64,000 bases of DNA, taken from the sequence record MH494197.1; one strand, written 5' to 3'. The notes beneath the pieces were generated by a model that was given only the letters and a program-made list of their open reading frames with translations, ran no database searches and was not told the DNA's origin. Numbering within the stretch: the first letter of the stretch is position 1; every line of letters starts with the position of its first letter. Made by a program: the position numbers and the translations under genes. This document shows positions 42,166 to 64,000 of this stretch, piece by piece.

Positions 42166-42199
42166 AAATCCCTGTACTTTGAAGCGTACAAATATTGGT

Positions 42200-43891: not shown

Positions 43892-44238
43892 TGTTTAGTA
43901 CTCAATAATGTGTTCTTCATAATCACCATTAGGCTCTGTTTAGCTTCTTTCATTAGTACTATCATTTTATGTACTAATGGCATAGGAAATTCTAAATCCC
44001 ATACTAATGATTCTTGAAAGTATTCCTCTGGTGATAAAGTACTTAAATCTTTAATATCAACGTGCTTGTATATTTTATTTTCGTAATTAACAAATGATAT
44101 ATATAAATCATTAATATAAGAATCATACGTAATTGTGAATGGCTTACCCTTGTAGTCCATTACATCTCTACATAGACTACTTTTGATATATATATGTTCA
44201 TAGGATTTATATACCTTGAGTTGTATATTAGTTTTCAT
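43888..44238 (-). CDS. family A protein
   Basis: LSPEEYFQESLVW. Confidence 0.65.
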   Translation of the reverse strand: MKTNIQLKVYKSYEHIYIKSSLCRDVMDYKGKPFTITYDSYINDLYISFVNYENKIYKHVDIKDLSTLSPEEYFQESLVWDLEFPMPLVHKMIVLMKEAKQSLMVIMKNTLLSTKQ

Positions 44239-44471
44239 ATTTCTCTTTATTAGATTGTGTGGTTTTATAGTGAATGAAATCTATTAATGTAATCAAGTAC
44301 AACGTCAAATAGTACTCTTGTTGATCTGTACCTAATGATACAAAGAACTTGTGCTCATAGATTAAAACCTGTTTCTCTTCAAATGGACATTTAATCCTCT
44401 GTATAGGCTTAAGTAAATGATAGTACTTATTAAATCTATGATACATTTCTAGTTCTGTCAGTACTTTCATA

Positions 44472-44693
44472 TTAAACACGTACTCCATTAGCTGTAGCAT
44501 CACGTAAAGCTGTCAAATACTTCTGTACTGCTTGCTCTTGCTTATTTGTACCTAAAAGTATATACATCCATAATTCACTGTAATGTACATCTTCTGTATA
44601 AGGGTTGTTGTAACTTTTTGATAATATAGCATCAAATTCAGATGCATGAACCCTTGTGAACTTAAGAATATCTTGTTGTGTTATGATTCTCAT
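44472..44693 (-). CDS. family B small protein
   Basis: MRIITQ start; ILLGTNKQEQAVQKYL. Confidence 0.7.
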   Translation of the reverse strand: MRIITQQDILKFTRVHASEFDAILSKSYNNPYTEDVHYSELWMYILLGTNKQEQAVQKYLTALRDATANGVRV

Positions 44694-45533
44694 ATTTTTC
44701 CTGTACTATCTGTATAAGAATACCTATGTGTGAATTAACAGTTCTCTCTTGATGCTGTGTTCCTAAGAGTGTCAGTACTATCATATCTGAACGCAAAAGA
44801 TTTTTTCAAGTTCACTTATATCAGTTCTTGAATCAAGTGCCATATATTTGTGATTATTCTTCCTGAATAGTGCCAAGTACTCTTGATTTGATATTTCCTT
44901 CATAGTTTATCCCTGATGCCATTTAAAAGTGCTCTAATATGTTCCTGTACGAATTTGTACTGACTGTCTGTTCCTAGAGTGAGTAGCAATCTTAAATCTG
45001 AACTTTTGATGTGATATTCTAAATCATTATTTGATTCTTGCATCAGTTTCTTAAAGGATGAGAAGTTTGCAGCCATTAGTTCAATGTATTCTGCTGTTCC
45101 TAGTGGTTTGTGTATTGGCTGTTTGTGCATTTTAATTTTATTACCCTTTGAGTGTATTAATGTAATTATACACATTGGCTTTTGATAGTTAGTTCCCAGT
45201 GTAGCTTGAACATAGATTTCATTTAACTTAATAATTTTATCAGTATCTGGTAGTTTTGATGTGTTAATGGCAAATAACTTCAAAACAGTCCATTTAAGAT
45301 TGTTAGGTATTCTTCGTCGGTAATGATTCGCATTTGCATTGGATAAACCTTTTAGTTCTTTGATGTAATCATTAATATTGCATTCTTGATAGTTAGTCCC
45401 TAGGGTAGCTTGAACATAGATTTCACTCATTAGAATATTTTTTCTTCATCAGGTAAATCTGTGGTCTTTGCTATATACAATTTTAGAATTAAACTACTTA
45501 ATAGTTCGTGGTATTCACTTGGTGAAAGGATTT

Positions 45534-45749
45534 TCATTTGCATGTTCTCAGTACAGATTCTTTAAGTTCATCGATGTAGTCCTCAACGAATTGCTCTTGG
45601 AAGTTAGTTCCAACATATAAAAGAACTCTTAAATCTGCTCTAAGTAACTCTTTTTCATCCTCATCTATATCAGACAATGTTATGTTTAAGAATTTACTTG
45701 TATTAAAGATTAACAATTCTGTTTGTTCACTGTGGTTTAAAATTTTCAT
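45534..45749 (-). CDS. family B small protein
   Basis: LYVGTNFQEQFVEDYI. Confidence 0.75.
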   Translation of the reverse strand: MKILNHSEQTELLIFNTSKFLNITLSDIDEDEKELLRADLRVLLYVGTNFQEQFVEDYIDELKESVLRTCK

Positions 45750-46162
45750 AATCTCTTTTTGCTTTCCTCGACAGTAGGTACAAATACGATTCTTCGTATT
45801 GTGCTTGGAAGTTTGTGTTTAAGAGTCGAAACAACTTCTGTTCTTCTAGAACGAGTTGCTTATCTTCATAACAACGGTAGCGTATCAACTTTTTGTATTC
45901 GATGTTGATTACATCCATTACTATAAGCCCATGTTCATCATCTGTCAAGTGCTTCATGCTTTTTTCTTTTCCTGATGTGTTTAGTTAAAAGGTATATTAG
46001 TTTTCTGATGTATTCTTCCTGATAGTTTGTTCCTAGGAGTGCAAGAAGTTTTGCTTCAACTAAAGCTAATTGACGTTCTTCGAATGTGTGTTCCAGTATG
46101 TACTTTGGGTTTGATTTTTAGATATTGCACTATTAGTTTTCATTACAATCTTATGATATTCA

Positions 46163-46420
46163 TTAACTGTTAGGATTTTTAAATTCTTGAGCATGTACCT
46201 TTTCCTTTATAGAGAATTTAAGATATCGAAGCATACTTTCAATGTAATACTCTTGTCTGTCAGTTCCAAGAAAGTACAGGAGTTGAATGTATAAAACTTC
46301 TGCACTCCTTTCGGCATGTGACTTGTTTGTGTCGTTTGGAAGTTGATTTGTAAGTTTTCTGGATTTAATTAATCGTTCTTTTAACTCATCGTCTGTTAAG
46401 TATATCATTTCATTTTGCAT
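46163..46420 (-). CDS. family B small protein
   Basis: YFLGTDRQEYYI; near-identical to 46457..46645. Confidence 0.75.
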   Translation of the reverse strand: MQNEMIYLTDDELKERLIKSRKLTNQLPNDTNKSHAERSAEVLYIQLLYFLGTDRQEYYIESMLRYLKFSIKEKVHAQEFKNPNS

Positions 46421-47562
46421 TTACTTTTTCCATAATAGTAATTTTGAGATATTTAATTATACGTTCAATGTGATACTTTGCCTATCAGTTCCAAGAAGGT
46501 ATGGTAATGACTGGAATAAAACTTCTGCACTCCTTTCTGCTGGGGTTTGGTTTGGGTCATTTGGAAGTTTATTTGTAAGTCTTTTGGATTTATCTAGTCT
46601 TTCTGTTAACTCATCATGTGTTAAGTATATCATTTCATTTTGCATTTAATGTTCCTTACGTAAATTGTCTGGATTAAAAGTGAAATCCATTTTTCTACAT
46701 ATTGGTTTTGATACTGTGTGCCTAAAAGACTCTGCATTTTAAACTCTTCTTCGAGTGCATATCTCGTTTCTATAGTAAAGCTTAAATGACCATATTCTTT
46801 ATCGTATCTTCTCAGTGCTTCCCCAATTCTATCAAATCTTTCTGCTATTCTGATGTTATTAATTTTATTCATCGCATTCATCGATCAGTACACCTTAGTG
46901 GACGGGTCATTTGATAAAAGTACAGCTTACCTTTGATTTCCAATAGTAACTCAGCAATTAATCGATTTACTTCTGGCTCTTGATAGTTTGTCCTAACAAT
47001 GCACCCATCTTTAACTCACGCATCATAATCATTTTCTTACTGTGTTGAATTTCTGGGTTGTGATAGATTGTATTACGTTTGTGTGTAATTTTTGTCATAC
47101 GCTCGGTATATTCATCTTTACTTAAATTGATCATTTGCATGTTCATCAACCTCACATTTATTTTCGATACAAATCATTAGTTCTCTAAGATAGTTTTTAT
47201 CTTACCTTCCTGATGGTTCGTCCCGAAAGTTGCATAACTCTGCTTCTATCATTTTGATTCTTCTGGTGTCAGGTTTCAATCTTTTGTTATTGAAGATTTG
47301 AATCCTTATATCCCTTGATGCATTTAAACGTTTTGATATTCATGGAAAGATAAATTAATCATTTACTTTGTATCTCTCTCTTGAGGGCATCAATTAACAA
47401 CAGTACAGCATTCTCTTGATAGTTTGTTCCTAAGACTGAAAGCATCTTAATCTCATTTACTACGATCAACTTCTTTGAGCGTTCAATAATGTTACTATTA
47501 TAAACGGCGTTACGTGCTGGATAAGTTTTGCAAGACGATCATAATATTCATCTTTACTTAAA

Positions 47563-47811
47563 TTAATCATTTGCATTTCTCGTACATTTACTTAGTTTAC
47601 TCCCAATGTATTTCTTAAGTGTAATTATATATTCCTCTACATAATACTCCTGATAGTTAGTTCCTAAGAATGCACATAGCTTTGTCTCACGCTTCATAAT
47701 CATCTTATTTTCGTGTTTGTTTACTTCACCGAAATGGATTTCATTAAGTTTAGGTAAGATTTTTGCTTGGCGTTCTTTATATTCAGATTTACTTAAATTA
47801 ATCATTTGCAT
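47563..47811 (-). CDS. family B small protein
   Basis: AFLGTNYQEYYVEEYI. Confidence 0.75.
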   Translation of the reverse strand: MQMINLSKSEYKERQAKILPKLNEIHFGEVNKHENKMIMKRETKLCAFLGTNYQEYYVEEYIITLKKYIGSKLSKCTRNAND

Positions 47812-49963
47812 TTACTTTGGATCTCCTTGACTAATGCATCAACCCACATGTCTATATACATTTGTTGATAGTTTGTCCCTATGAGTGCCCTGCATAGAGT
47901 TCAGCTATCATTGCATGTTTTAGGTTGGCAGGATGCTCTTATCAGATTGAATCTTTACTCTTCTGTTGGCACATGTTTTCAGGAGTCTGATGTATTCAAA
48001 GCCTTGTAATTTTCTCATTCTTTAGATATCACCTTGTTACGTAAGGCACTTAACAATACGTCAGTGTAGATGTTTTGATAGTTTGTTCCTACGAAAGCAC
48101 CCAACTTCATTTCAGCTATTATAACACATTTGTCCTCTTGTGCAATAGACTTGTCTAAAGAAATACTAACAACTTTCCTTCTTATAGCTTGTAATCTCCA
48201 ATGATACTGATACTCATTTAGGGTTATCATTCTCTCGCCTCCATATCTCGGTTCTAATGTGTTGACATTGTGCTTCGATGAACATATCTATTGATTTGGC
48301 AATTGCGTTTTTATCTGTGCCAGTCATCAGTACAAGCATCTCGGCCTCACAGTGAAGTAAACGCATGATATCATAGGGTAATATTCCAGATACCGTGTCA
48401 TAGTGTTTCTGTGCCAGTGTCTGTAATAGTTTACAATACATTTTGTGATTTAGTCTGTGTCGCATTGTTTATTCCATTCTTTTTGGCCCTCTGGGTTTTA
48501 TATTGGATTTGGTTTCTTAATGCTGATAAGTATCGTTGAATGAACAGATCTTGATAGTTTGTTCCAATGAATTTCATAAGATAAAGTTCACCGTTGATAA
48601 CATCCACTTCAGGTGCACCATATAAGGCATTGTTTTTCTAAGGGCATGGATTAAAGAGAATAGGGCAGTTTGATACTCAACTCCTGATAAAGTCTTCATG
48701 TTTTGTGAGCCAATAATCATCTAGTTTATCCTGTATAACATTCATTAATTGTTCGACATATTCTGTGCAAAACTTATCTTGATATTGAGTCCCATAAAGT
48801 ACAGCAACCATAGCTCATTAACTTTAGCTCGCATTTGGTTCCATGTAAGGCTGGGGTCATCGTAGACTATCCTTGCTATAGGGTTAGTTTACGGACTATA
48901 GTTTCATATTCATCTAGTGTTAAGTGTTTCATTTACATTTGTCCCTTATTAGATCAGTGAGGGCAACTATGTGTGCAACAACATACTCTTCCTGAAAGTT
49001 CGTCCCAGTACAGCCATCATGCGTATATCGGTGGTGTTTATCCTGTGTTCCCTTACACATAAACCTTCTGTGTGAGGAAGTGTAAAATATTTGTTTATTG
49101 CAGCAATGATAATTTTATTCTTCTCGGAATTACTTAAATGTTTCATAGTTTGCTCTTAATGTATTTCTGGAGTGCAATTATATACTCATTCAAGAAGTGC
49201 TCTGATAATCTGTGCCGAGGAATGCACCCAATAGTATATCATTTTCCAATACTAATGCTAAGTTCAAATCATCAGTCTCTTCATATACTATGAGAATTTC
49301 AAGTTGTCTGGCAGCGACGCGTTCGGTATATTGATTTGAGTTTGCAATGATATTCATAGTTTACTCTTTATGTAATTCTTGAGTGCAATTAAGTATTCCC
49401 CTACATAATACTCCTGAAAGTCTGTATCCAAAAATGCACCCATAAGTAAATCTTTTTCTAATACCCTTGATAAGTTAAGGTCTGCATTTGAAAGGTATAT
49501 AAGTAAGATTTCACCCTGTGCGGAATTGAAACGTTTCTTATATTCTTCTGGTGTTAAAAAATCATAGTTTACTCTTAATATCTTCTATTAAAAATGAATC
49601 CAATCGTCAACATACTCTTCCTGATGGTTTGTGTTCAGTACAGCCAACATGCGGATCTCTGCTCTTGCAACTTGGATTTCAGTTTTAGAAAGGTCTTTGC
49701 TGATATCAAACATTAAGTCCATGTATTTCAAGATAAGACCGAATGATTGGGTTCGTGTTATAGTTTTCATTGTTTCCTCGTGGACAATATTTCATTTTTC
49801 AATGCATCCATATATTGAATCACCCATCTTCCCTGATAGCTTGTTCCCAATGTAATCAAAAGGTATAACTCAATTCGTTCTAAGTTTGTGTCTGTGTTAT
49901 AAATCTTTACCATGTTTTTACGTAACAGTTCTTGATAATCTTCTTTATTTAAAATACGCATTT

Positions 49964-50161
49964 TCATAGTCTACCTTTTATGTCCCTTCGTAATTCTTGT
50001 AAGTATAGTTCGATATACTTTTCTTGATAGTTAGTTCCTATGAAAAGTTTCATAACCAATTCACGCTTATATGCAATACCACGGATATGTGACATATGTA
50101 GGATATATGCCATGTTGGATATGAGTGTGTGGTTGTGCTCTTCTTCAGTTAAAATACGCAT
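49964..50161 (-). CDS. family B small protein (first gene of the array)
   Basis: MRILTEEEH start; LFIGTNYQEKYIELYL. Confidence 0.75.
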   Translation of the reverse strand: MRILTEEEHNHTLISNMAYILHMSHIRGIAYKRELVMKLFIGTNYQEKYIELYLQELRRDIKGRL

Positions 50162-50309
50162 AGGGACTCCATTAAAAATAATATCAATCCCATAATATAC
50201 GATTCATATAAAAGTCAATAACATTTTATTCGTAATACCCTTTATCGAAGTCGCTAAGGTTACCCGCCCTTTAGCCCCTACGCATTTTGCCATAGTCCAA
50301 TCCTTTTAT

Positions 50310-50379
50310 TCATAAAAGTCAAGGGATTACCTATGCATTTTTTAACGCTGAAGTTTAAAAATGCCTTGACTTTTTATGA
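50310..50379. repeat. nested inverted repeat at the array/early-region junction
   Basis: TCATAAAAGTCAAGG ... CCTTGACTTTTTATGA arms enclosing a GCATTTTTTAAC/GTTTAAAAATGC inner stem; third ATAAAAGTCAA copy at 50208. Confidence 0.7.
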
Positions 50380-50637
50380 TTCAGTACTAAATCCTTTTAC
50401 GCATTAATCCTTCGTTACGCTTACGATTATCTGTGTATCCCCATAGTCCTGCCATACTTCCACGCCAGCCGTCGCCCGGTTAGTCGTGCTGTCATCTGCT
50501 TAATGGTCTTAGGCTTTAGTGGAACCTGTTGCAGTACTGTACGCATAGTATCATCGACGTTATCGTGTACGCCTGCAATAGTGCCTAGGACGCTGTATAC
50601 GTGTATAGAACATATGTATGCCCTCCTGATATAGTTA

Positions 50638-50657
50638 AGGCCGCTACAAGGCGGCCT
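50638..50657 (-). terminator. GC-rich hairpin, probable terminator
   Basis: AGGCCGC-CTTGTA-GCGGCCT followed by TAACT. Confidence 0.5.
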
Positions 50658-51646
50658 ATGATGTTTGGTGATGTGTAACGCTTACAGTCCTAAGATAGTG
50701 CGTGCTTCGTTACGTTCCGTGCACAGCTGCATGATGTGAGCAAGTAAGTCCTTGCTAATGTATCCGGTGTTCATAGCTTCACGAATAGATACATCATAAG
50801 CACCGAACCCGTGCGAACGATACGCACATCATTCAGGTTAGTATTATAGATACCGCCGAGATCAACGGCTTCGAATACTACATCAACAGAATATTCATTG
50901 TTGCCATCGTGGAAGTTTTCCAGTGCAATAGTATTGGATACCGCCCAACGTTTGCAGTTTCAATGATGCGGCACTGTTCCGGTTGGATAGTGCCATTACT
51001 TACAGCGTACTCCAGTGCATCTTTACCAAAAGTCCGAGCCAGTACTAAAACGTCAGCGAAGGAAGTGATTGAGAAGGTCATGATAAAACTCCTTAATTTA
51101 GGAGGGAGAACCATTTCCTCTCTATGTAAAACATTATACATGAATCTAAGTACTATGCAAGTACTTTTACATTTTAATACCGGATTCAGGTAGCGGTGAG
51201 ATCCATATTCTGGATCGGTTTCGGTCCAGTACTGTAAATCGATAGTACCTTTCGCGTTAATCTTGTCTACCAGCTTATTCATCTTAGCGTATACTACGTC
51301 AGCATCGATGCGTTTAAAGCCAGTAGCTTTAGTGAAGTAGTAGTGATTTGCTTCACTATCATTAAGGATATACCGAGCACCGTTTGCCGTTTGTGCGATA
51401 ATGATTGAGTATTCTACGTTACGGTCGAGGCCGTCGATGAATACAGAGGAAACATTAGTACGGATGAAAGCTTTAACGATAGCGATTGAAGTAGTCATTT
51501 TGAATCTCCTAACTTTGTGGGCCGTCGCACCATTGCCGCCCTACGAGATACATTATTGCAGTACTGATATACTTTGTCAATACTTTTTATTAATAGTTTT
51601 AGTTCCACCAGCAGATAGTTACTCACCGTTATTAACTATATATTTT

Positions 51647-51724
51647 GGATACACCTATGCACCCTGTGGGCTAGTTTTTGTCTATGCGTATATATAGCAG
51701 GACTGACCGAGTCAATCCCTTTTT
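51647..51724 (-). repeat. CCCAYAGGGTGC element, copy 1
   Basis: GGGATTGACTCGGTCAGTCC..GCTATATATA..TAGCCCACAGGGTGCATAGGTGTATCC. Confidence 0.85.
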
Positions 51725-52022
51725 ATTCTTTTTGTTAGATGATTCTCCAATCATCAACGATCATGGTAAGATACCGAACCAGTGATTCGAGTGATTCGTG
51801 TTCTCGATAGTCTGCCGCTCCACCAGCGGTACAAGTACAGCCGATTAAGCCGTTTTGTAGTTCCGGATCTTTACGTCGATCTGGTTGGCTTTAGCTTCTT
51901 TCAGTACTTCAACCGGGCGAGAGCGATAGACATAATGTTTTACTCCAAACTATTGGCGGGAGAACTATTCCCCGCTCTATGTAAAACATTATACATTACT
52001 GGTTAGTACTGTCAAATAGTTT

Positions 52023-52280
52023 TTATGAAATATCTTCGATGTAGTCGGCCCATTTCATTTTTTCAGTACTGTCAATGGCTACCGGATTATTTGGATCAAA
52101 CCATTCACCATTACCGCAGTACATACCCACGGCTACGGTTTTATAGCCATCCCGGGCCGCACACCACGACATTGCACGATAGATATGGCCTTTAACTGGT
52201 TGCAGTACTGGTAACGTTTTATGGTCTTCTACGTAGGCCATAGCTTGTGGATTTACCCGATATTGTGTGAACTGTTCCAT
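52023..52280 (-). CDS. hypothetical early protein
   Basis: 85-aa ORF with its own promoter (52309) and RBS. Confidence 0.65.
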   Translation of the reverse strand: MEQFTQYRVNPQAMAYVEDHKTLPVLQPVKGHIYRAMSWCAARDGYKTVAVGMYCGNGEWFDPNNPVAIDSTEKMKWADYIEDIS

Positions 52281-52716
52281 TATGTTTCCCCTTGTAGTTA
52301 GTAAAGTTATTACATCAGTACTATCAAGCTATGTCAATAGTACTGAAATAAAACTTTTAGATTAGATTATTGAGGCCGTCAATGGTAGACTCACTTTCTT
52401 CTTTCTCCCATTGTCGGTAGTACTTCCATGCTTCATGATAGGTGGCGATCAGTTCATCTTTTGATCCGGTTACATGCCAGTACTGAATCACGGTGAGCGG
52501 TGTTATAGATAGAATCGAATGATTTCTTCTCTTCTGCCGTTAGCTACTTCCCGCATCAGTTCATCAAAGTTAGCCATTTTATTACTCCTTTTAGTGGGGA
52601 GGATATCTCCCTATGCAAAACATTATACTTTGTTTTAGTTATTATGCAAGTACTTTTTCATATAAACATTAAATTCTACACCGCCGTAACCTTCCACGAT
52701 GATATGTTTTGCGTTA

Positions 52717-52902
52717 TCACGTTTGCACATAGTGAAACCATCGTTTACGTGTTTTGCATTTTCGGGCGACATCACCGATAGCGGCACATACGGCACTAAT
52801 AACAGTATTCCGCAAAGTACTGGTATCATTGGCGGTCATAGTAGTTTGCAGTACTACGTTGTCGTATACGTGTGCATTGATAGTGATTTCGATAGTGTTC
52901 AT
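52717..52902 (-). CDS. hypothetical early protein (frameshifted)
   Basis: own cassette promoter at 52950. Confidence 0.55.
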   Translation of the reverse strand: MNTIEITINAHVYDNVVLQTTMTANDTSTLRNTVISAVCAAIGDVARKCKTRKRWFHYVQT

Positions 52903-53233
52903 GGTGTATCTCGACTGGCGGGAGAACTATTCCCCGCTCTATGTAAAACATTATACGTTAATCTAACTACAATGCAAGTACTTTTAAATTTTATTTCCGA
53001 TATAGTCCGGTCTATTCTTTTCGGTCATACGCTTTGCTAATGTTTGCATATGGCTTATTGCTTGTAGTGTATCCTCTTCCGGGATGAATCGAGATAATCA
53101 GGATCATTCTTCACCTTGCAATGATTATGATAGCGTAGTACTGCCAGTACTTTTTAACTTCTTCTACTGTCATAATAAGTACCCACTTCGTTAGCTTTCA
53201 GGTTAGTATCAATCATCAGTGGATTTTTGTAGT

Positions 53234-53440
53234 TCACAAAACGAGTAGTTTTCTCGATAGCGAATCCCATATAATCCAGCTTACTAACAGTACATTCATT
53301 CTTAAAACTTCTTTCGCTGCATCGATGGCTGATTGCATGGATAACCGACCATCTAAATTAATGTTTCCAAATGATCCACCAGCAGAAGTAGGATTACCGT
53401 TCATATCTTTAATGATCATAGTAGCGGAGTAGCTGGACAT
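53234..53440 (-). CDS. hypothetical early protein
   Basis: own cassette promoter at 53494. Confidence 0.6.
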   Translation of the reverse strand: MSSYSATMIIKDMNGNPTSAGGSFGNINLDGRLSMQSAIDAAKEVLRMNVLLVSWIIWDSLSRKLLVL

Positions 53441-53527
53441 AATTTTGTTTCCTTTTATTGGTGTGGGAGAACTATTCTCCCTTGATGTAAACTATTATAC
53501 AGTACTGATATACTTTGTCAAATACTT

Positions 53528-53931
53528 TTATTCGCCCATATAGATTAGATTATCATCGCCTACATAGGATCGCAAACGTTGATTTCTTCGCAGTACTTCG
53601 TGAATACATCGCCATAGTGACCTAAACCACGATCCCAAAACCAGTTCCGTGACCTTCGCGGGTAAGGAACAGATCATGACCAGCTTGCTCATAACCGTAA
53701 TCAATAAACATACCGCGAACTACTTCCAGATCATTACCGTGTTTCTCAATGAAGCGAGAACATGCAATCACTGCCGCTTGATGGGCTTGCTCTGATAATT
53801 CATAATCTTCCGTAATCGCCGTTCTCATTGTGTACAGTACTGAATTGCATAGCTTCAATGTAAGCTACAACCATTGCAGCATGATTTTTATCGTTAGTGA
53901 TGTTCCGAGCGAGATTAGTAGTAGTAGACAT
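53528..53931 (-). CDS. conserved phage protein with GHD(L/F)(F/W)LTRxGHGxGFWD motif
   Basis: GHDLFLTREGHGTGF; one extra T restores WDRGLG; own cassette promoter at 53983. Confidence 0.7.
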
Positions 53932-54347
53932 GATTTTATTCCTTTTAGTATCGGGGAGAACTATTCTCCCTTGATGTAAACTATTATACAGTACTAATAT
54001 ACTTTGTCAATACTTAATTACGTTTAAAATGATATGTGCCTTTATCATCCTGTACGCCCCATACTGATTTACCATCAACACCAGTGAAGCCGGATTGTAA
54101 TTCAATATGGAAACCATTATTATCAACTACAAAAACTTTTTATTTTCATCCCGATAACATTGATATTCTGAATCAACATTAAAGGCCGCATCATTCAGAA
54201 GATTAGAAGCGTAAATGCAAGTCATTGTAGTCATGATTTTATTCCTTATTGCCGTGGAACCGTTCCTCTCGATATAAAACATTATACTTGATTCTAAGTA
54301 TAATGCAAGTACTTTTTAAAATAGTTTTCAGTACTGAATACTTATAT

Positions 54348-54435
54348 AATAGATACACTTCCGCACCCTATGGGTCAGTGAGTTATCTCTCAATGGATAT
54401 ATATAGCAAAGGACTGACCGAGTCAATCCCTTTTT
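54348..54435 (-). repeat. CCCAYAGGGTGC element, copy 2
   Basis: GGGATTGACTCGGTCAGTCC..CTGACCCATAGGGTGCGGAAGTGTATCTATT. Confidence 0.85.
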
Positions 54436-54507
54436 AATCTTTTTATCGTGTTACCTTACTTGCTGCCACATCACGCTTTTTATAGTACTGATTCCAGATA
54501 TTGCTGG

Positions 54508-54825
54508 TTAAACCGTAATCAAGTACTTTAATAAGTCCATTACGATCCCGCCGATATTCTGTTTTCTGATATCTCTTATCGTTAGTGTTGATAATGTATC
54601 ATCGACGTGTTGTAGTGCATCAGCAAAGCGGTGCTGGCGTTCAATGGCATTACGTTTAATATTGTACTTTAATTCATTGCACGCGTTTACGTGCTTTACA
54701 CTGCCTTTACTTGCAGTACTCAACCGATCCATAACGATAAACATATTATCAGGATCGCATAAATGCATATGCACCTTTGCAAAGTACTGTTTCAACTGAG
54801 GGCGGTCATAGTCTAAAAATTCCAT
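54508..54825 (-). CDS. hypothetical early protein
   Basis: 105-aa ORF with AAGG RBS. Confidence 0.55.
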   Translation of the reverse strand: MEFLDYDRPQLKQYFAKVHMHLCDPDNMFIVMDRLSTASKGSVKHVNACNELKYNIKRNAIERQHRFADALQHVDDTLSTLTIRDIRKQNIGGIVMDLLKYLITV

Positions 54826-55892
54826 ACCTTACATTCAGTTTCATTTTGTTCGACACCCGCATCACAATTCGCGACCTTAATCACTAACCGATCATTTAAA
54901 GCGAAAACTATACGGGAAGATCCGCCCGATGATCTCCAGTCCAGCTAACCGACAAGCTGAAAGGATCTCTTTGTTGGTTTCCATTTCTGACAGTGTACGG
55001 ATGAATTTAGTATAATTACGCATTGCATGTTCTCCTTGAGTTAATGAAACTATATTACAGTACTTTACTATCAATGGCAACTACTTTTTAACATTAACGG
55101 CGTGAATCACTTCCTTAGTGTTTTTAGTACTGAATACTTTCGCCGCTCCTTGTTCGACCGTGATACGATAGCGACCATTAACATCAACCATATTAATAAA
55201 GTCCGGCGTGCTGAATGGTGTTGTTTTGCATTTGAGTACTGTTAACAGTTCCACCAGCGATGTAGTTTCTTTGATACGTTTTTCTAAAGTAATCATTTTG
55301 TTTCTCCCCGTGTTGGTATGTACATATAGTACTAAAACATTTGAGTACTGTCAATTAGATAATATTATATTTCTTAAAATAAAATGCGTCTTGTGTTGGT
55401 TGATACTCGATACCGTTACCGTTATTGACTTCAACTAATAAACCTTTGTCAATAAGTTTTTAATAGTACGATACCCTTGTTGAAAATTGGTAAAATGTGA
55501 ATCATTACGAAAGGTATAACCGTGCTTAACTGCTTCATCAATAGTTTTCTTTTCGATTTTAGATAATTTCATTTTGTTTCTCCCGTGTTGGTATATGTAC
55601 ATAGTACTAAAACATTTGAGTACTGTCAACGTGATATTAGTTTTATTTTCTTATTGTATTGTTGATGCTCATAAAGGTTTATCTTTCCTGTGTTCTCGAT
55701 TACTATCCTGTTGTTAGTGTCCACATCGATTACACGCAGTTTCCGTTGCTTAACTTCCGGGTAATAGGTTACCATTAATAAACTCATTAGCAAGCTGTAC
55801 GGCCTTTGTGATGATTCTCTTCGGTGCTTTATAGTGTACCCGTAAGATGTTATCTTTATATAGTTGAACCTTAATCATTTTGTTTGTCCTAT

Positions 55893-55916
55893 AAAAAGGC
55901 GGGAACTGATCCCGCC
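55893..55916 (-). terminator. Rho-independent terminator
   Basis: GGCGGGA-TCAGT-TCCCGCC followed by TTTTT. Confidence 0.8.
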
Positions 55917-57581
55917 GTGTTGTTAGTACTGCAAGTTATTAGATAACCGGCGGCGTTTACTGTATACTGTTACACGATTACCCTTACGGTCGTGTCGGAT
56001 CTCTTTCTGGTTGCGAATCAGTTCACTTGGACGCTTAAGGTTTGCCGTGATCCGCGTGAGTCCATGCATTGGCATTTACCTGTACTTTGATATCAGAACC
56101 AGCGATAAACTCATCTTGTGCGTCAGTATTGCCGCCAGCATATCCGCTCGTTTTAGTTCTGCTGCTGTTAGTACTGGCTCAGGTGAATTCACAATATCAG
56201 AGATCTTTGAACTGTACGGCCCAGCGTTGGCCTTTCGGTGCATCTTTGCCCATGTCTTTAAATGCTGCTCCTTCCTCGCGTGCAACAATACGGGCAGCTT
56301 CACGGGTAGCGTAGAATTTAGTAATCATGGTATACATCCTATTAGTTAAGTTAGTACTACAAGTTAGAGTCTATTATAAAGTACTATCTGGGCAATGTCA
56401 AATAGTACTTTAAATGGATTCTATTACATGTCTTTCTTACGTTTTACATCGTGGTAGCGAACTGTTATTTCTTTGTTGATCTCTTCCTCGATGCGGTGAA
56501 TAACTTTTTCTTTCGGGTTGAAACCTATAACGGTTTCTTTAATGATCTCAAGCCCGTGTATTCGCCTTGTGTACCGTAACCGTATGTAAAGGTTTCGTGT
56601 CCCGTGTCTTCCAGCGGTCGCCAATTAACGCAGACACGTAGCAAGAGTGGTAAGTATTGCCGTGTGAATCAGTCCACCGATTAACGTTAATGTCAAAGGA
56701 GGTTACAATTTTCAATTCTACTTTCTGGGCAAGGATCATAGCCATTTTATTTCTCTCTTTTAGTTAGGAGGAACCATTCCCTCACTTGATGTAAACTATT
56801 ATACAGTACTAAGATACTTTGTCAATACTTATTTTTGGAAAGTTTACGCATTAATTCTACGCTTTCTTGTGAACGTTTTGCTACCGGCAAGCTGCATGGG
56901 TAGTAAACATTTTGTATAGTCTGACGCTTTGCCACCGAACCGAGCGGCACGTTCACGGGCACTTGGAACTAATACTATTTCTTTCTTGCAGATAGTGCAC
57001 TTAGCCATTTTATTTCTCTCTCTTTGTTAGAGGGGAACCGTTTCCTCACTCGATGTAAACTATTATACAGTACTAAGATACTTTGTCAATACTTAATTAT
57101 TGTAAATGTCGTGAATAGTGATAAAGTTTTTACGACCGTAAACCTGCAAATCAATATCAATGTAGTGCTTATCTAGTACATCCTCGACGCTTAACGCGGT
57201 GTCGTGGATATCTTCGTAGAATTGAGTATCTACAATCTTGCTTAAGTCATCCGGCGTTAACTCATCGTTAAGCAGTTGAACCGCCGGATATCTGCTTCAC
57301 GTTTCCAGTCTTCCAGTTAGTAGTCAGTACTTGTTCGATTTCGTTAGCTGTCAGTAGAATCCGCATTTTTATGTTTCCTTATCAGTGGTTGATGTAAGTA
57401 TTATACTCGTTTACTTTCTATTGTCAAACTATTTTATCAGGGAGTTTTTCGTATGTCTTACTCGACTACTTAACGGGGTTACTTGTTTCGTTCCCCGTCC
57501 TGATGTAAAACATTATACTTGATTCTAAGTACAATGCAAGTACTTTTTAAAAATAGTTTTCAGTACTAGCCACCAGCAAAC

Positions 57582-57653
57582 AATAGATACATTTATGCAC
57601 CCTGTGGGCTGATTTGTTTCTATGCGTATATAATAGCAAAGGACTGAATCCCT
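57582..57653 (-). repeat. CCCAYAGGGTGC element, copy 3
   Basis: GGGATTCAGTCCTTTGCTATTATATA..CAGCCCACAGGGTGCATAAATGTATCTATT. Confidence 0.8.
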
Positions 57654-58959
57654 TATTCAATTATTTTTAAACTTCTTTCGGGTTGCGATAGGTGATAGCG
57701 TTCGGGTACATTTGTTTAATGTTATTCCATGCCCGGTTGACATTGTAACCACTTGATCGAATCAGTTGGTTACTACCGACACCTTGAAACACTACTTCGA
57801 ATAAGAATTCTTTCATGCTTTCACCTCGCGATCTGCTTTACCTTTACGCCGACATTACTAATTGTTCGCGTTGCCATAAGTCGAGTGATACAAAAGTTTT
57901 GCGGTATCACTTTTAGGATACTCGCCATTAGTACCTAACCGATAAAACAGATCTTTCAGTACTGATAATTCTACTTGGATCATTATACTTTCTCTTTGTT
58001 GGGAGGGAACTATTCTTCCGATATAAAACATTATACACTTTATTCAGTACAAGTACTTTTAATCTTTCAGCCAATGATCCTGAATGAATTTTTCACCGGA
58101 ACCTTGCTGCATTGATTGTAACAGACGTTCACGATGAGCGGCGGCGAATTGCTCAGTACTATGCGTTACACCGGTTGATATCTGGATTCACCATTGGGGC
58201 TGATGTATTGTACATCCCACGGTTTTTCGTTAGTATCAGACCATTTACGAACGATTAGTTGACCTTGCATTTTTCTTTCTCTTAGTGGGGAGAATCATTT
58301 CTCCCCTTCATGTAACTTATTATACAGTACTAGATTATCTTGTCAATAGTTTTATTCACCTTGTTTGAATTTAGTTTTCTCCATTGATTCCATGATTGCA
58401 ACCAATACGCCGTGGATCTCGCTTAACGCGGAATCACTAAAAGCATTAATGAATAGTCGATCATTCTCGCGAATATTTTTAATGTACTTTTCAGCAGTAG
58501 TTGCGAATTCATTCAACGGTAGATCAAATGCTTTATCCCATGATGGATGGCGTAATTGTAACAGTACTGGATTATCACGATCACGGGAAAACGTACCAGT
58601 GATGAAACATACGCCCGAATACTTTCGAACTGGCAACGGACTTCCTTTGTGATAGTAGTATGAATGTACATTTATTGTTATCCTCTATTAAATTAATATT
58701 ACAGTTTATGAATCAATTCTTTATCTAAGCGATAGCGTACATTATTAATAGTAACGGCATTGTTTTAATGCTACGCTGTACAGGTCCACCAGCAATAACA
58801 AATGTTGCTTTATTACCCCGAACAATGATAGCACTTCCGTGATTACCGAAATCATCTTGTACTAAAATACTTGATAAGTTTTCCATTTTATTTCTCTTAG
58901 TAGGGAAGATGTTTCCTTGATGTAAGTACTATAACAGTACTGAAAACTAATTGCAAGTA

Positions 58960-59313
58960 CTATGATAAAATCATGATAGGATATTCACTATCGATCAGTA
59001 CCTCGAATCCGAACCCTTCGTACCATTCTTTAAGATTAAAGGCGTTATCTTCTCCGTATCGCATTCTAAGATGATACAATCTGAATCATCAGCGGCATCG
59101 ATAAAGGCATTCATTAATTCGTTACCTTCACCATTGCCCCGACTATCAGGATCAACATAAAGAGAATCAATGAAAGCAACACGGTCATAATCAAGATCCG
59201 GTGCAATGATTCCACGTTTAACAAACCAGTACTGCAATTGTGCTACTTTGCTGTACCTGATAACCAGTGATCTCGCCATTGTCAGTAGTACGCGTGATAT
59301 GTTGTATTCCCAT
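58960..59313 (-). CDS. GNAT-family acetyltransferase (frameshifted in the assembly)
   Basis: FIDSLYVDPDSRGNGEGNELM (acetyl-CoA-binding motif A) and, in the next frame, LKEWYEGFGF (motif B); own promoter at 59343. Confidence 0.8.
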
Positions 59314-59877
59314 GATTTCTATCCTCAGTTAAGATATAAAACATTATACACTATCTTTCAGTACTGTCAATTACTTTTATCTCATAGATCTATGCCAACA
59401 ATTACGCGGATCTCTTTAAAAGTACTATCATGATCCTCCGGCAAGTAATACAATACATGCACCTATAACGGCCCGGCGTCGATTCTCAGGGATTTTACCG
59501 CCGCAGTCGAGGCAATGTACAGTGATTCTCTTTGTGCGTTAATTTGCTTTCTAGCGTGGTTAACGGCGGCCTGAATCACTGCGTTAATCTCGTCTTGTTC
59601 GGCCCCGTCTTTCGCGAATCCTACAGCCATTATTTTAACCTCATTATAAAAATACTATAGTACTGTAATGCTACAATAATACTACTAGTGCTAATCTTAT
59701 TCAAACCACATGATACTACATATCCACCAGCATTACCACGGATAGTAACGCCTTTGTACTGTCTATATAAATTCAACTGCGTATATTGCCTTTGATCAAG
59801 AATTGATCAGAATTATACGCCTTATGCTAAATTGATCCAGTACTTTTGATCATTTATTGATCGATGTTATATAGTTA

Positions 59878-59912
59878 CATTTGTGCACCCTATGGGTTAG
59901 TGACGTTCTCGT
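59878..59912 (-). repeat. CCCAYAGGGTGC element, partial copy 4
   Basis: CACTAACCCATAGGGTGCACAAATGTA downstream of the cassette promoter at 59925. Confidence 0.7.
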
Positions 59913-60224
59913 CTTGATGTAAGTATTATGCCAGTACTGGAGGATATTGTCAATAGATTATTTTAATTTTTTCTATCATTAATTAATGCTTTCAGTACTA
60001 TACTAATAACTTGCAATGATTCATCAATGACAATGAAATTATTCTCTTTCATTAGATGATAGTTACCATTGATTGTATATTCTAACGAGTACTGTTTACG
60101 TTTAATTTTTGATAATGTTTCTATTTGTTTTTGTACTGATTTCATGCTAATCATTGTCAAACGTCCTGTAACGCATTCTAACGAGATAAACGGTTGAGTA
60201 CTGGCATTGTATAGGGTAATGATT

Positions 60225-60252
60225 AAAGCCCACCAGCGTTAACCAGTGGGCT
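60225..60252 (-). terminator. probable terminator
   Basis: AGCCCACTGG-TTAACG-CTGGTGGGCT followed by TTAAT. Confidence 0.55.
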
Positions 60253-62066
60253 ATAATCTTACATCTTGCGGATAATCTTAACAGTATCTTTCACCGATTT
60301 ACCGTTTTGCTGACATTGCTCGATCATCGCGTATTGTTCTGCGGTCAGATCCTCGCCAGTTTTTGCCAGTACTGCGTCGATGAATGAATCCAGTGCGATC
60401 ATTTTGTTTCTCTCTTAGGTTAAGTTAACTACTGTTTATAAAACTTATTATACAGTACTATCAAACTATGTCAATAGTACTGGTAATATATTTTAGCGGT
60501 AGTCGTCGTATGCTTTATTCACGGCGAATATAACTTTCAAAGGCTTCGTCTACCGTTTCATACTCCCGAACATAATCACCATATGAAACTACATACATAC
60601 CTTTTGATCTTCAAACGTCATGATGATAGAATCCAGACCAACGATTTCAGTTTTTGCGATGATAGCCATTTTTAATTCCTTAGTAGTGTAGTTGATAAAA
60701 GTTATTATGTCAGTACTATCAAACTATGTCAATAGTACTGTGATAATATTTTAGTTAATGATAGTCAGTGTAAAATTGTAATCCCCTGCCCGTATAGTAC
60801 TTTATCGCCGAACGTTCCAACACGTTTCATATTGCAATAGATACCCATAACACTTTTACATCTTTGATATTCCGAACGCCAGTAATATCCTTGTTTAAAT
60901 GATCGTGATCAGAAAATAAAACTTGTTTTGCATTTTTCAGTACAGTGCAGATATTAGCCATTTTGTTTTCTCTTCTGTTAGTGGGGAGAAGTTTTTCTCC
61001 CTTGATGTAAACTATTATACAGTACTATAATCTATTGTCAAACTATTTTTTATATTATTCGAAATCTTCTGGACCGGACTGATAATCATCTTCACCGTAT
61101 GCACTTTCTAACCGCTCGCCAGTGCAATCATCAGTTAGTGAGTCATCCTCATAGTTCACGTCTACGCCAGTGATGTAAAACTGGCTATCGTCTGGATCAT
61201 TGAAATTAATTTTCTGGATGTTTACAATAACTGTATTGATGCCGTGACACCGCCATCAGCCGTTACAAAGTACTGATATTTTTCACAACCGCCTGAATTG
61301 AAACCGTAATTAATTTCGGCCCGACCATCACTTAAACGCAGTGTCTGAGCGATGATTTCATTTTCAAAGTTAGATTGAGCAATTGCAATAGTCATGATTT
61401 GTTTCTTATTATCAGGGAAACCGTTTCCCTTTCGATGTAAAACATTATACGCTTATCAGGAAGTAATGCAAGTACTATTTCACGTTAATTTCAAAGTACT
61501 GCTCTTTGATGTTTTCCTGTTGGTAAATCTCGTTTAATGCTTTAAGATCTAAAACCTGTTTACCTGCTGCCTGAATATACTTTTAAGAGTCGCTAACAGC
61601 TTCTCAGGCGTGTTTGTAGTCTTACGTGTTGGGATCTTATCGTGCCCCATAGCGTAGTACTGCTTACGTGCTATAGTACTGATAACACTGCGGTACGGTT
61701 CCATGATCAGCTTGTCTGTATTCGTCGCTATCCCCAAACTTCATACCGTGGATCGCAAAGGTCATCATCATGCGGTCGTTATCGCGGATATTGTGGGGCA
61801 GTCGGCAAGCTCGCGAGTCAGTGACATAGTGATCCCCACGTCGCCACCCAGCGGTAAAGGTCGGGCGATAAAGAAACCGTTAGGGAATACTTTCAGGAAG
61901 TTTTCTTGAACTGCTGCGACGAATTCGATGCTATTCATAATTCATTTCCTTAATTAGTGGGGAAGTTGTTTCCTCTTGATGTAAAACATTATACGCCTAT
62001 TGAGATAGTTTGCAAGTACTTTCTACAAATACTTTTAAAATAGTTTTCAGTACTCAATACTCATAT

Positions 62067-62156
62067 AATAGATACACTTATGCACCCTGTGGGCTAGTGA
62101 GCTATCTCTCAATGAATATATAATAGCAAAATGGCTGACCGAGTCAACCACTTTTT
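62067..62156 (-). repeat. CCCAYAGGGTGC element, copy 5
   Basis: GGTTGACTCGGTCAGCC..TGCTATTATATA..CTAGCCCACAGGGTGCATAAGTGTATCTATT. Confidence 0.85.
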
Positions 62157-63652
62157 CATTTATTTTAGCTTTTAGAATCGCCGCCTTTCGCGTCATGCCT
62201 TGCTTGATGTATTCTGTACTTTCGCTTTACGTGCATTCGCTTTATTTGCTTTCGTAAACGCCGAACAACTTTTATAGTTTAAACCTGTTGGATTCATTTA
62301 AATCACCATAAAGAATAGATAGGTTACTAACAACGCCGCGATCAATGCACCGACCGAACTGTAATAAGCTAATGATCTCATTTTTAGCCTGAAAATAATG
62401 TTTAATTTGAGCGGCGGTCAGTGCACAATTACGCAGGAAGTTTTCTGTATAACTTTTGCGAGTACTGAAAGAGAATTGACCTTTGCTGCTGCCGATAGTA
62501 ACATCAAACCGAGCGTTGTATTGTTTCATTTTGTTTCTCCTGTTATTGGGGAGAATCATTTCTCCCTTCATGTAAAACATTATACAGTACTAAAACTAAT
62601 TGCAAGTACTATTTTTAGATTTACGCAAACTTTCTACCATCTCAGGAGTAAGGTCTGCGGGTAGGAAACTACTTCATCAACGAAACGTAAAGGAATACCC
62701 CAGCGAAAGGTGAACGTGCTTTCTTAGTATTACTCTTTTTGATGCTTTCATTTCATATTCTTAATTAGTGGGGAGAATCATTTCTCCCTTCATGTAAAAC
62801 ATTATACGCGTTTAAAACTAATTGCAAGTACTATTTGAAAGTAAATGCTCATACGCTACATTAACTACGTTTTCAATAACCGACTGTACAGAAAGATCCC
62901 CACTTCCGGCTATAGTAGAAATCGCTTACAGTAGTGTCATCGTATGCAAATACTTTACCGTGACTGCATCAATCACATACATATTAACCTTTAAGATGTC
63001 GATCTTATCCTGTACAGTAAGCATATTAATTAACCTTTTAAGTACTGACTTAAGTAATCTTGTTGATCTTCGGTGATTGCAGCCATCTTCCCTAGTACTG
63101 GATTAATGATATAATCCCTGTAACGTCCTGTAACGCATTCTCAGGCGGTTTAACGGCTGGGGTAGCCATAGCCATTGCCGACTTGTTCGACGCTGTAACG
63201 CTCATAAAGGCGGCATTCTTCCGGTGTTAACATAGCATCAATGCGTTTCATTGGTTTAATGATGCTTTCGATCTCATTCAGTACTTGATTAACGTTCATG
63301 GTATAATCCCAATATAAGCGGCCTAAATCGACCGCTAACGATGTTTTGATTAATAGGTGTATGGTTGACGTTCAAACAATGATTGCACGTTGTACGCCCC
63401 GCTTATGGGCTTTGCTGGTAAATCAATTTTATATTGTTCACGCTTAAAGATAATAAAACGGCAATTGTTTTAACATCAAAATTGATTGAACGTTCCGAGT
63501 TTACCATCGTGCACAAATACAAGATAACCGCTCGCTACTTGTTTTGTAGTACTGGTTGCAACCATAGACCGCCGAACATGTGTACCTGCGTCGATTAAAG
63601 TACTGATATTTTTCATTTTACTATCCTCTTAAGTTGATTTAATTTCTTTCCC

Positions 63653-63690
63653 TATGCAGACACTGTACCAAAGTATCTGCATAAAGTAAA
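63653..63690 (-). promoter_or_regulatory. promoter TTTACT-N17-TACAGT overlapped by an operator-like inverted repeat
   Basis: TATGCAGA(C)ACT-GTACCAA-AGT(A)TCTGCATA spans the spacer, -10 and +1. Confidence 0.5.
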
Positions 63691-64000
63691 GCTAATTAAA
63701 GATCTTTTTACGTTTTACATCCTGTACAGTACAATGCAACGGGATAGACAAATCATTGCACAAACGATAGAGGGAGGTTTCATCAGTATTAAGCCCGTCT
63801 ACTGATTCCTTTAAGAGAGATAACGCCGTTTGTTGGTATGCATCTTCATAGCCATAAGTAAATGATTCAACCGCCAGATCATTCAAGCCGTTATCCAGTT
63901 CGACGCTTACATGACAAGAATGATGTATTGCCATATGAATCAGACCAACGTTTACCGTCAACATTGATTGCACGGATTGCAGCCGAAACGGTGTTAATGA

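Follow-up and report, generated by a model that had tools for sequence, protein, structure and literature searches.

The pre-early genes of phage T5 are located in its terminal repeat. SPO1's module for host takeover likewise occupies a terminal region and comprises 26 genes that are arranged in operons and served by fewer promoters, as the 1998 study is related in PMC6873191. In the jumbo phage PA5oct, RNA-seq revealed high early transcription of the genes in the terminal repeat, with TTGAC and TATAATA promoters at the mapped transcript starts (Lood et al. 2020, PMC7318152). In the Rak2-like phage CBB, 18 RpoD-like promoters were predicted genome-wide, 3 of them in the repeat (Buttimer et al. 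2017, PMC5259590). At the RNA level, the ompA and papA mRNAs of E. coli carry 5'-terminal stem-loops that act as stabilisers (Emory, Bouvet and Belasco 1992, as related in PMC3997798). The closest known system is formed by the promoter-early stem-loop (PeSL) cassettes of the T4-type phages RB49 and phi1, the recombination of which has been demonstrated by excised circles (Arbiol et al. 2010, PMC2839356). Here we describe an array of small genes and promoter cassettes in a 64,000-nt stretch of sequence record MH494197.1 (the window). With a probability of about 70%, the array is an early-gene module of Asteriusvirus carried in a direct terminal repeat (DTR), in which the cassettes serve both as expression signals and as the joints of a gene-shuffling array.

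MH494197.1 is the genome of Escherichia phage CMSTMSU, an Asteriusvirus jumbo phage; window position x corresponds to record position 62,000 + x (100% identity), and the record carries the flag UNVERIFIED_ORG. Relatives with 89-96% identity include WPEC3, G17, vB_Ec-M-J, 121Q, ph0011, BF17, UE-S1 and fEgEco12. In vB_Ec-M-J, the stretch homologous to the window region lies within an annotated DTR of 21,525 bp. The terminal repeat of fEgEco12 measures 20,993 bp, as confirmed by PhageTerm and restriction digests, and that of Sharanji 20,668 bp; the genome papers on these two phages do not mention promoters. The inner end of the fEgEco12 DTR (20,993) corresponds to window position ~50,251, the first base of the G17, WPEC3 and BF17 records is window position 50,257, and on crossing the junction the G+C content changes from 0.35 to 0.41. 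Judged by its homology to the DTRs mapped in relatives, the CMSTMSU region is a DTR. Without exception, its genes and promoters occupy the minus strand and run from the end of the chromosome towards the interior, and in fEgEco12 all 56 of the 56 DTR genes are oriented from the physical end inward.

A sequence-only reading of the window had described a repeated unit of promoter, hairpin and ribosome-binding site, and this unit was found, with overwhelming statistical support, where it had been placed. The exact combination TTGACA-N16/17-TATAAT occurs 12 times in the window, compared with an expectation of 0.15 ± 0.36, and 11 of the 12 sites are on the minus strand at 51,988-61,041. The sequence TATAATNNTTTACAT, which joins the -10 hexamer to the initial transcribed pattern, was detected with at most one mismatch 18 times in 51,124-62,806, always on the minus strand (1.2 expected for the whole window), and a scan with relaxed hexamers yielded 30 cassette-type promoters at 51,138-62,827. 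The cassettes are ~80-100 nt long, directly oriented and spaced 220-600 bp apart. They typically consist of an A-rich upstream stretch, the -35 hexamer, a spacer with AGTACTG at its end, TATAAT, an initial transcribed sequence that is fixed, a hairpin, a Shine-Dalgarno sequence and ATG; the A-rich runs ahead of the -35 are found both in the window and in the cassettes of fEgEco12. In the example at 58,270-58,346, TTGACA follows an A-rich stretch and is separated from TATAAT by 16 bp that end in AGTACTG; a T-rich discriminator and CAT come next. The leader then forms, 5 nt past the predicted +1, a stem of 8 bp closed by a loop of 4 nt, which precedes ACTAA, a purine-rich Shine-Dalgarno sequence and ATG. 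The four near-identical pairs named in the sequence-only reading were all recovered as direct-repeat families: 56748-56835/57012-57099, 53444-53531/53933-54020, 55307-55364/55582-55639 (86%) and 62543-62614/62765-62836 (92%). Its count of about 30 small genes, each with its own promoter, holds for the promoters only. According to the WPEC3 annotation of the orthologous stretch, from which four spurious open reading frames (ORFs) were subtracted, there are ~39 small genes; ~27 have their own promoter and ~12 trail another gene with only a ribosome site and are co-transcribed. The hairpin, which had been described as part of the unit, is present on about two thirds of the promoters, and the remaining third has a short unstructured leader. 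In the cleaner genome of fEgEco12, 20 kb of the DTR contain 12 exact promoters and about nine promoters that match at 11 of 12 positions. An exact-pattern scan of IMG/VR for the cassette matched few contigs.

The promoters are of at least three types, one with TTGACA, one with AGTACTTGCAW, and one with TTGACT and an extended -10 that is embedded in a terminator hairpin. In about half of the cassettes TTGACA is replaced by TTGCAA or TTGCAT with AGTAC immediately 5'. AGTACT occupies fixed positions in the cassettes, just upstream of the -10 and at the -35; the fEgEco12 DTR contains in addition eleven TTGCAA-16-TATAAT promoters and five TTGACT-17-TATTAT promoters with an extended -10. The AGTACTTGCAW promoters, which have only three or four of six matches to TTGACA but an invariant upstream AGTAC that is kept even in a divergent relative, might not be immediate-early at all but depend on a phage factor, an activator or a sigma factor, in which case the DTR would interleave two temporal classes. 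These phages encode their own sigma factor, and one gene is preceded by both promoter types in tandem. However, TTG with a 16-bp spacer and a perfect TATAAT normally suffices for sigma-70, and both promoter types share the downstream leader. We regard two temporal classes as rather unlikely.

Recombination at the cassettes was examined in a survey of gene-sized indels in the DTRs of nine genomes, in which overlapping alignment blocks were allowed; when they are disallowed, the junction homology of pure indels reads just 0-13 nt. Eight of the 13 distinct DTR indels have the length of one cassette-to-cassette period and a junction homology of 46-125 nt, and one cassette is retained. Four of the eight are in the window (the units near 57,002, 53,920, 61,932 and 52,939). 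For a 60-aa gene, the single cassette of UE-S1 and 121Q aligns to both flanking cassettes of fEgEco12 with an overlap of ~108 nt; the two forms differ in length by 270 bp, which is one cassette period. The breakpoints between the window and eight relatives are nearly always at a stop codon, at a promoter edge or a few bp after a start codon. Near-identical cassettes front ORFs whose first 120 nt show background identity, and some ORF alleles that are 72-82% identical stand behind cassettes that are 96-100% identical. Since the cassettes recur in direct orientation at such short intervals, the comparison shows them to be recombination substrates: the genomes are set apart by exactly one period of cassette plus ORF, and a single cassette is left at the junction.

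Several points weigh against this combined reading of the region. Five of the 13 indels have a junction homology of at most 13 nt (0-13 nt of microhomology), among them those of the GNAT gene, with CAGTACT at both junctions, and of the promoterless DUF7247 gene. Selection against gene disruption would likewise leave breakpoints at gene borders. Since the nine genomes are related, not every one of the eight events is independent. In their similarity, neighbouring cassettes exceed randomly chosen pairs by a slight margin only (292 of 5000 permutations), and local gene conversion is therefore not established. Most of the ORFs have no function detectable in Pfam, PHROG and PADLOC scans. No Asteriusvirus transcriptome was found in the literature, and transcript starts and timing are predicted only. 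The microhomology indels, the fact that breakpoints, whatever their kind, almost all coincide with stop or start codons, and the marginal neighbour effect would also suit a simpler model, in which the cassettes are expression signals only. Their likeness would then stem from purifying selection on an optimal promoter and leader, without a selected role in shuffling, and the coincidence of junctions and cassettes would be a by-product, as repeats recombine regardless and indels that cut genes are purged. We consider this model unlikely. The near-identical pairs also share the promoter spacer, which selection for strength leaves free, the eight events match the cassette period with one cassette kept, and the same pattern experimentally yielded the excised circles in RB49 and phi1.

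The leader hairpin of the cassettes is G-rich, comprises 7-9 bp and starts 3-6 nt past the predicted +1. Among 168 distinct cassettes from the nine genomes, 123 have a hairpin of -5 kcal/mol or lower within 9 nt of the predicted +1, most commonly with 5 unpaired nt. The arms of 64 distinct hairpins were compared by anchoring them on the loop, with a permutation control. Cognate arms form 7.0 uninterrupted pairs, a value reached in none of 2000 permutations, compared with 3.9 for non-cognate arms, and G.U pairs outnumber A.C juxtapositions by 33 to 14. The 5' arm is 91% purine and the 3' arm 10%. In the minimum-energy folds of the leaders the Shine-Dalgarno sequence and the ATG are unpaired, and the hairpin is followed by an ACTAA-type sequence without a T run. 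When 66 leaders were aligned with MAFFT alone, RNAalifold detected no structure; the alignment gaps were inside the 5' arm. Rfam contains no family for the leader hairpin or for the non-coding element C described below, the sole match being a chance-level snoRNA (E 0.41). The co-variation of the arms and the G.U bias speak for a helix in the sense RNA rather than for an operator in the DNA and point to a structure that acts at the RNA level.

The 5' hairpin may mainly shield the mRNA from decay that depends on its 5' end, and promoter escape could be helped by the purine-rich start, a tentative proposal whose chances we put slightly below even. Some properties of the leaders do not fit it well. 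Classical 5' stabilisers tolerate fewer unpaired 5' nucleotides than the predicted 3-6, which in most cassettes are perhaps too many for full protection of the 5' end. The hairpin is missing from about one third of the promoters, and the high purine content of the 5' arm, found in every copy, is not demanded by pairing alone. If the inverted repeat 3' of the -10 were instead a double-stranded DNA operator, a dimeric phage or host repressor could use it to turn the early promoters off; placed at about +6 to +25, the 8-bp palindrome, whose centre measures 3-4 bp, occupies a typical roadblock position, and its sequence is partly conserved (G run, GAA, TTC, C run). Nevertheless, the two arms vary together, which is not expected from a shared half-site consensus, the G.U pairs spoil DNA symmetry yet retain RNA pairing and exceed the reverse cases, and the purine arm is always 5' on the transcript, which makes an operator very unlikely. 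In a further model, the stem-loop terminates or attenuates transcription coming from upstream, as proposed for the PeSL stem-loops, which have a poly-G followed by a poly-C tract, a composition similar to that of the cassette hairpins, and cut read-through like a strong terminator. The cassette hairpin, however, is downstream of its own predicted start, and the lack of a T run, with the ACTAA-type sequence in its place, argues against termination. A terminator scan on the gene strand picked element C and a few other sites but not the cassette hairpins. We judge a terminator function very unlikely and retain the RNA-level structure that may protect the mRNA.

In the model that we prefer, ~39 very small, mostly orphan genes would be driven by the ~30 standardised cassettes, the host sigma-70 promoters of which match the consensus fully or nearly so and would be fired by unmodified E. 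coli RNA polymerase as the DNA enters the cell. The transcripts would pass several genes until they reach one of the few terminators, either an element C unit or the hairpin at 55,898-55,916, and thus form a nested set of co-terminal mRNAs. By analogy with the systems described above, the DTR genes are presumably transcribed early. The sequence-only reading, which had compared the array to terminal host-takeover modules, had suggested that the cassettes could serve as homology arms and had assigned anti-host functions to the genes, is partly supported. The first comparison is borne out by the position of the region inside a DTR mapped in relatives and by the early transcription of the PA5oct DTR genes, and the second claim by the period-length indels, with breakpoints at the cassettes. 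The third finds some weak backing in the TraR/DksA-like, GNAT and ParE-like domains but none in the PHROG families, which are unannotated, or in defence-system searches. A titration of host RNA polymerase, which the reading had also put forward, is speculation. The reading did not include the minus-strand orientation, the location in a DTR, promoter types two and three or the non-coding units scattered among the genes.

In the stretch, 21 coding sequences are annotated in CMSTMSU and 44 in WPEC3. CMSTMSU differs from WPEC3 by 152 indel events in 13.95 kb (50,257-64,000), and 38 of the 44 genes have a broken reading frame. That the small genes of CMSTMSU have truly decayed and the module is a relic is nevertheless scarcely credible, since of the 152 events 149 consist of bases that the window lacks, 116 concern single bases and 85 fall in homopolymer runs of at least 3, since between WPEC3 and fEgEco12 there are only 7 gap openings over 11.4 kb, and since the unverified status of the record and the likewise shortened G runs of the hairpins are a signature of sequencing or assembly error. 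Real pseudogenisation was thus rejected in favour of assembly error. The CMSTMSU record is unfit for gene calls, and the protein work was done on intact orthologues (40 WPEC3 proteins). Four annotated ORFs of 30-39 aa are probably spurious because they overlie element C and start upstream of its promoter.

Pfam identified among the 40 orthologues a TraR/DksA-like zinc finger, a GNAT N-acetyltransferase, a ParE-like protein and DUF7247, together with three weak matches that include Pkinase. PHROG matched 39 families, and among the 25 matches listed all are of unknown function; PADLOC gave no solid defence-system match for the 40 proteins. When compared with solved structures, the zinc-finger protein matched E. 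coli YbiI (9.6e-12) and TraR (2e-6). TraR binds in the secondary channel of RNA polymerase, and the cassettes, with their A/T-rich discriminators, can be expected to withstand a TraR-like factor. For the ParE-like protein no solved relative was found by sequence. Its gene (55,626-55,916) is the sole gene with a classical terminator, not a promoter, ahead of it, and no antitoxin-like partner was identified. The kinase-like protein matched kinases in the Protein Data Bank weakly (E 0.005-0.3) and is annotated as a kinase in ph0011 and fEgEco12. The TraR/YbiI-like, GNAT and ParE-like proteins and, with a weak match, the kinase-like protein are candidates for an anti-host function of the small genes, for which these matches provide a weak indication.

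Between the genes are five copies of a non-coding element, termed element C. In the clean genomes it consists of an A run, a hairpin that contains TTGACT, a T-rich tail that creates TGnTATTAT, ~25 nt and the box CCCAYMGGGTG. The hairpin is terminator-like in both directions, so that element C may combine a bidirectional terminator, a promoter and a small-RNA-like leader; the embedded promoter, a strong one, would transcribe through the box. The fEgEco12 DTR contains nine copies, three of them antisense and equipped with their own terminators, which results in promoter-to-terminator units of ~95 nt. At 3,167-3,295 in the outer DTR of fEgEco12, two box units converge and overlap, and their transcripts would be complementary over ~70 nt. 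Conserved in RaK2-like jumbo phages, element C units also occur in a RaK2-sized contig and in other jumbo-phage contigs; half of the contig matches to the box pattern are chance matches in collagen-like repeats. The consensus fold contains only the 4-bp box hairpin, and the folds of single units agree only on the box hairpin (in some units) and the 3' terminator. A copy of a host RNA was considered as the origin of element C, but no match was found in 5,426 complete E. coli genomes, from which it follows that it was not copied from a host RNA. A tRNA search found none. Element C units are probably small-RNA genes that also punctuate transcription. Two abundant non-coding RNAs have been found in the terminal repeat of PA5oct (PMC7318152).

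AGTACT is the commonest hexamer of the window, with 236 sites compared with 18 ± 4 expected (13-fold), whereas CGTACG and GGTACC have no site. In the first 34 kb (1-34 kb) most sites fall within coding sequence, where all three frames are used and the flanks are not conserved. The density is 5-7 per kb in the DTRs of eight relatives and in RaK2-like contigs and 0 per kb in phage inny, and we found no paper that mentions the excess. Two zones, 34,048-42,837 and 44,882-50,382, lack AGTACT entirely, while elsewhere there is one site per ~250 bp; both zones are arrays of small hypothetical genes. A more far-reaching model would have the DTR act as a platform for gene capture and expression with the cassettes as joints, integron-like but through homologous recombination. 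The palindrome AGTACT would be the site of a dimeric phage factor that times the shut-off of the early promoters and marks or initiates exchange, and the box units would be a new family of abundant small RNAs conserved in RaK2-like jumbo phages. As a whole, this model is distinctly unlikely.

Additional observations concern the surroundings of the array. The outermost 1.7 kb of fEgEco12 (1-1,688) contain no annotated gene but several consensus-like promoters on both strands, as well as a 14-bp inverted repeat based on CAGTACTG. Just inside the DTR, at ~43,000-50,250, there is a tandem array of tightly packed, overlapping genes of 65-85 aa that is homologous to vB_Ec-M-J 1-7,152. In vB_Ec-M-J, 25 of the 29 genes of the array belong to a single paralogue family linked by blastp, phrog_4148 (unknown function), and internal promoters are lacking. 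Megablast with a 12.9-kb query gave matches in 10 records named Campylobacter phage and in one Acinetobacter phage; these are absent from the matches of the cassette search. The coordinates of all features are listed in Table 1.

Table 1. Features of the CMSTMSU terminal-repeat region (window positions; protein lengths are those of the WPEC3 orthologues where stated)
Feature	Position	Strand	Remarks
Inner 13.7 kb of the ~21-kb DTR	50,251..64,000	.	DTR runs past the window end; DTR/unique junction ~50,251
Cassette, TTGCAA-type, hairpin 62771-62788, Shine-Dalgarno sequence, ATG	62751..62827	-	92% identical to cassette 62529..62605
Cassette, TTGCAA-type, hairpin 62549-62566	62529..62605	-	Promoter and hairpin scans
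Element C, non-coding (box 62,093)	62033..62165	-	A run, 9-12 bp hairpin with TTGACT, TGnTATTAT, ~25 nt, invariant CCCAYMGGGTG box
Cassette, TTGCAA-16-TATAAT	61938..62015	-	Upstream arm of 545-551 bp gene unit found in CMSTMSU and WPEC3 alone
Cassette, TTGCAT-16-TATAAT, hairpin 61414-61430	61395..61471	-	Downstream arm of 545-551 bp unit
Cassette, exact TTGACA-16-TATAAT, hairpin 60984-61001	60961..61041	-	
Cassette, TTGACA-17-CATAAT with TG, AGTACT on both sides, short leader without hairpin	60669..60732	-	
Cassette, exact TTGACA-16-TATAAT, two AGTACT, without hairpin	60402..60474	-	
TTGACA-17-CATAAT promoter, then short hairpin, CCCAYMGGGTG box (59,896), 48-aa gene	59776..59953	-	
Element C copy (box 59,896)	59,816-59,926	-	Within the 59776..59953 promoter unit
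TraR/DksA-type C4 zinc-finger gene, 85 aa in WPEC3	59377..59630	-	Pfam zf-dskA_traR 1.8e-9; 4 indel events, frame broken here
Cassette, exact TTGACA-16-TATAAT, short leader, for GNAT gene	59313..59370	-	
GNAT N-acetyltransferase gene, 118 aa in WPEC3	58960..59313	-	Pfam; missing in G17 and BF17; 2 indel events, frame broken here
Cassette, TTGCAA-17-TATAGT	58886..58956	-	
DUF7247 gene, 107 aa, promoterless	58352..58671	-	345-350 bp unit missing in 121Q, vB_Ec-M-J and UE-S1, without junction homology; 2 indel events, frame broken here
Cassette, exact TTGACA-16-TATAAT, strongest hairpin of the window 58287-58306 (-13.9 kcal/mol, z -5.5)	58270..58346	-	
Cassette, TATAAT at 58030-58035, AGTACTTG upstream	57983..58060	-	
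Element C copy (box 57,608)	57550..57650	-	Upstream hairpin incomplete in the CMSTMSU assembly
Tandem promoters of one gene: TTGCAT-16-TATAAT with long hairpin (57472-57499), then exact TTGACA-16-TATAAT (57400-57427)	57366..57539	-	
Cassette, exact TTGACA-16-TATAAT, hairpin 57030-57051	57008..57089	-	Upstream arm of 264-270 bp unit missing in 121Q and UE-S1
Cassette, exact TTGACA-16-TATAAT, spacer identical to that of cassette 57008..57089, hairpin 56766-56786	56745..56825	-	Downstream arm of 264-270 bp unit
Cassette, exact TTGACA-17-TATAAT, without hairpin	56328..56401	-	
Intrinsic-terminator-like hairpin and T run	55898..55916	-	Immediately upstream of the ParE-like gene, which lacks a promoter
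ParE-like toxin-domain gene, 84 aa in WPEC3	55626..55878	-	Pfam ParE_like 6.4e-11, over the curated cut-off; 2 indel events, frame broken here
TTGACA-17-TACTAT promoter, short leader	55572..55629	-	
TTGACA-17-TACTAT promoter	55296..55354	-	Copy of promoter 55572..55629, 86% identity
Possible protein-kinase-like gene, 194 aa in WPEC3	54443..55023	-	Weak: Pkinase E 0.004, below cut-off; 4 indel events, frame broken here
Element C copy (box 54,374)	54314..54444	-	
Cassette, TTGCAT-16-TATAAT, hairpin leader	54234..54308	-	
Cassette, exact TTGACA-16-TATAAT, hairpin 53950-53975	53931..54010	-	Upstream arm of 488-495 bp unit missing in 121Q, BF17 and UE-S1
Cassette, exact TTGACA-16-TATAAT, hairpin 53465-53481	53440..53521	-	Downstream arm of 488-495 bp unit
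Cassette, TTGCAT-16-TATAAT, hairpin 52918-52937	52902..52977	-	Upstream arm of 328-335 bp unit missing in 121Q
Cassette, TTGCAT-16-TATAAT, hairpin 52597-52611	52577..52649	-	Downstream arm of 328-335 bp unit
TTGACA-17-TGTAAT promoter, AGTACT on both sides, short leader	52280..52337	-	
Cassette, exact TTGACA-16-TATAAT, hairpin 51956-51975	51933..52015	-	
Element C copy (box 51,670)	51610..51733	-	
TTGACA-17-AATAAT promoter with TG, structured leader	51498..51580	-	
Cassette, TTGCAT-16-TATAAT, hairpin 51106-51122	51081..51160	-	First unit of the sequence-only reading

These data provide a concrete anatomy for the early module of widely isolated jumbo coliphages that are candidates for therapy. 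Recombination at the cassettes would explain why near-identical isolates differ in the gene content of their DTRs, and the ~39 orphan genes, presumably early, form a set in which host-directed functions can be sought, with the TraR-like RNA-polymerase binder and the ParE-like protein among the candidates. Of the phages introduced above, CBB belongs to the same wider jumbo group and has a predicted terminal repeat of 22.5 kb with consensus sigma-70 promoters and UP-like elements ahead of short hypothetical early genes; a leader hairpin, cassette repeats and recombination are not reported. PA5oct comes from a related jumbo-phage clade and also has a long DTR full of small uncharacterised genes, but it differs in its Pseudomonas host, the 39-kb size and 105 genes of the DTR and the lack of sequence similarity, and neither a leader-hairpin cassette nor recombination at cassettes has been described. 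With SPO1 and T5 the array shares the location in a terminal repeat and small genes with strong host-type promoters and strong ribosome binding sites. The early products of SPO1 and T5 shut down host processes; host shut-off has been demonstrated there and is only suggested here, and no protein homology between the SPO1/T5 module and the DTR genes was detected. The array resembles the ompA and papA stabilisers in that a stable hairpin stands near the transcript's 5' end, upstream of a ribosome binding site that is accessible.

Outside the jumbo phages, the 147-kb, phi92-like phage inny, which belongs to another subfamily, contains a run of small genes (MN850601.1 128,787-131,881). Most of these genes stand behind a -35 of the TTGACA type and a -10 resembling TATAAT, together with a hairpin leader rich in G and a Shine-Dalgarno sequence; AGTACT is absent, and one inny cassette is 83% identical over 94 nt to a cassette of the window. 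The design is therefore not confined to jumbo phages, and its likeness in inny reflects either cassette exchange between phage groups or convergence.

The most extensive agreement is with PeSL. Intergenic cassettes of ~100 bp are common to both systems; they combine AT-rich DNA in the upstream part, an early promoter of the sigma-70 consensus, a stem-loop made of a G-tract followed by a C-tract, and a Shine-Dalgarno sequence and start codon at the 3' end. In both, the cassettes are placed ahead of orphan genes in the most plastic regions of the genome, and relatives differ by having either an ORF between two cassettes or a single cassette. The PeSL stem-loops, however, act as terminators and lie in the interval from the -35 to the -10 or overlap these hexamers, or are found upstream of the -35 or immediately ahead of the start site, whereas in the present cassettes the stem-loop belongs to the transcript (about +4 to +27), no T run follows it and its arms co-vary as an RNA helix. 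Unlike PeSL, the array is located in the direct terminal repeat of a jumbo phage, has AGTACT at fixed promoter positions and contains separate terminator units. The principle that expression cassettes are at the same time recombination joints would thus extend from the T4-type phages to the terminal repeat of a jumbo phage. The array is of a known kind, PeSL-type cassettes in a probable early module of a DTR, but represents a variant whose stem-loop belongs to the mRNA.

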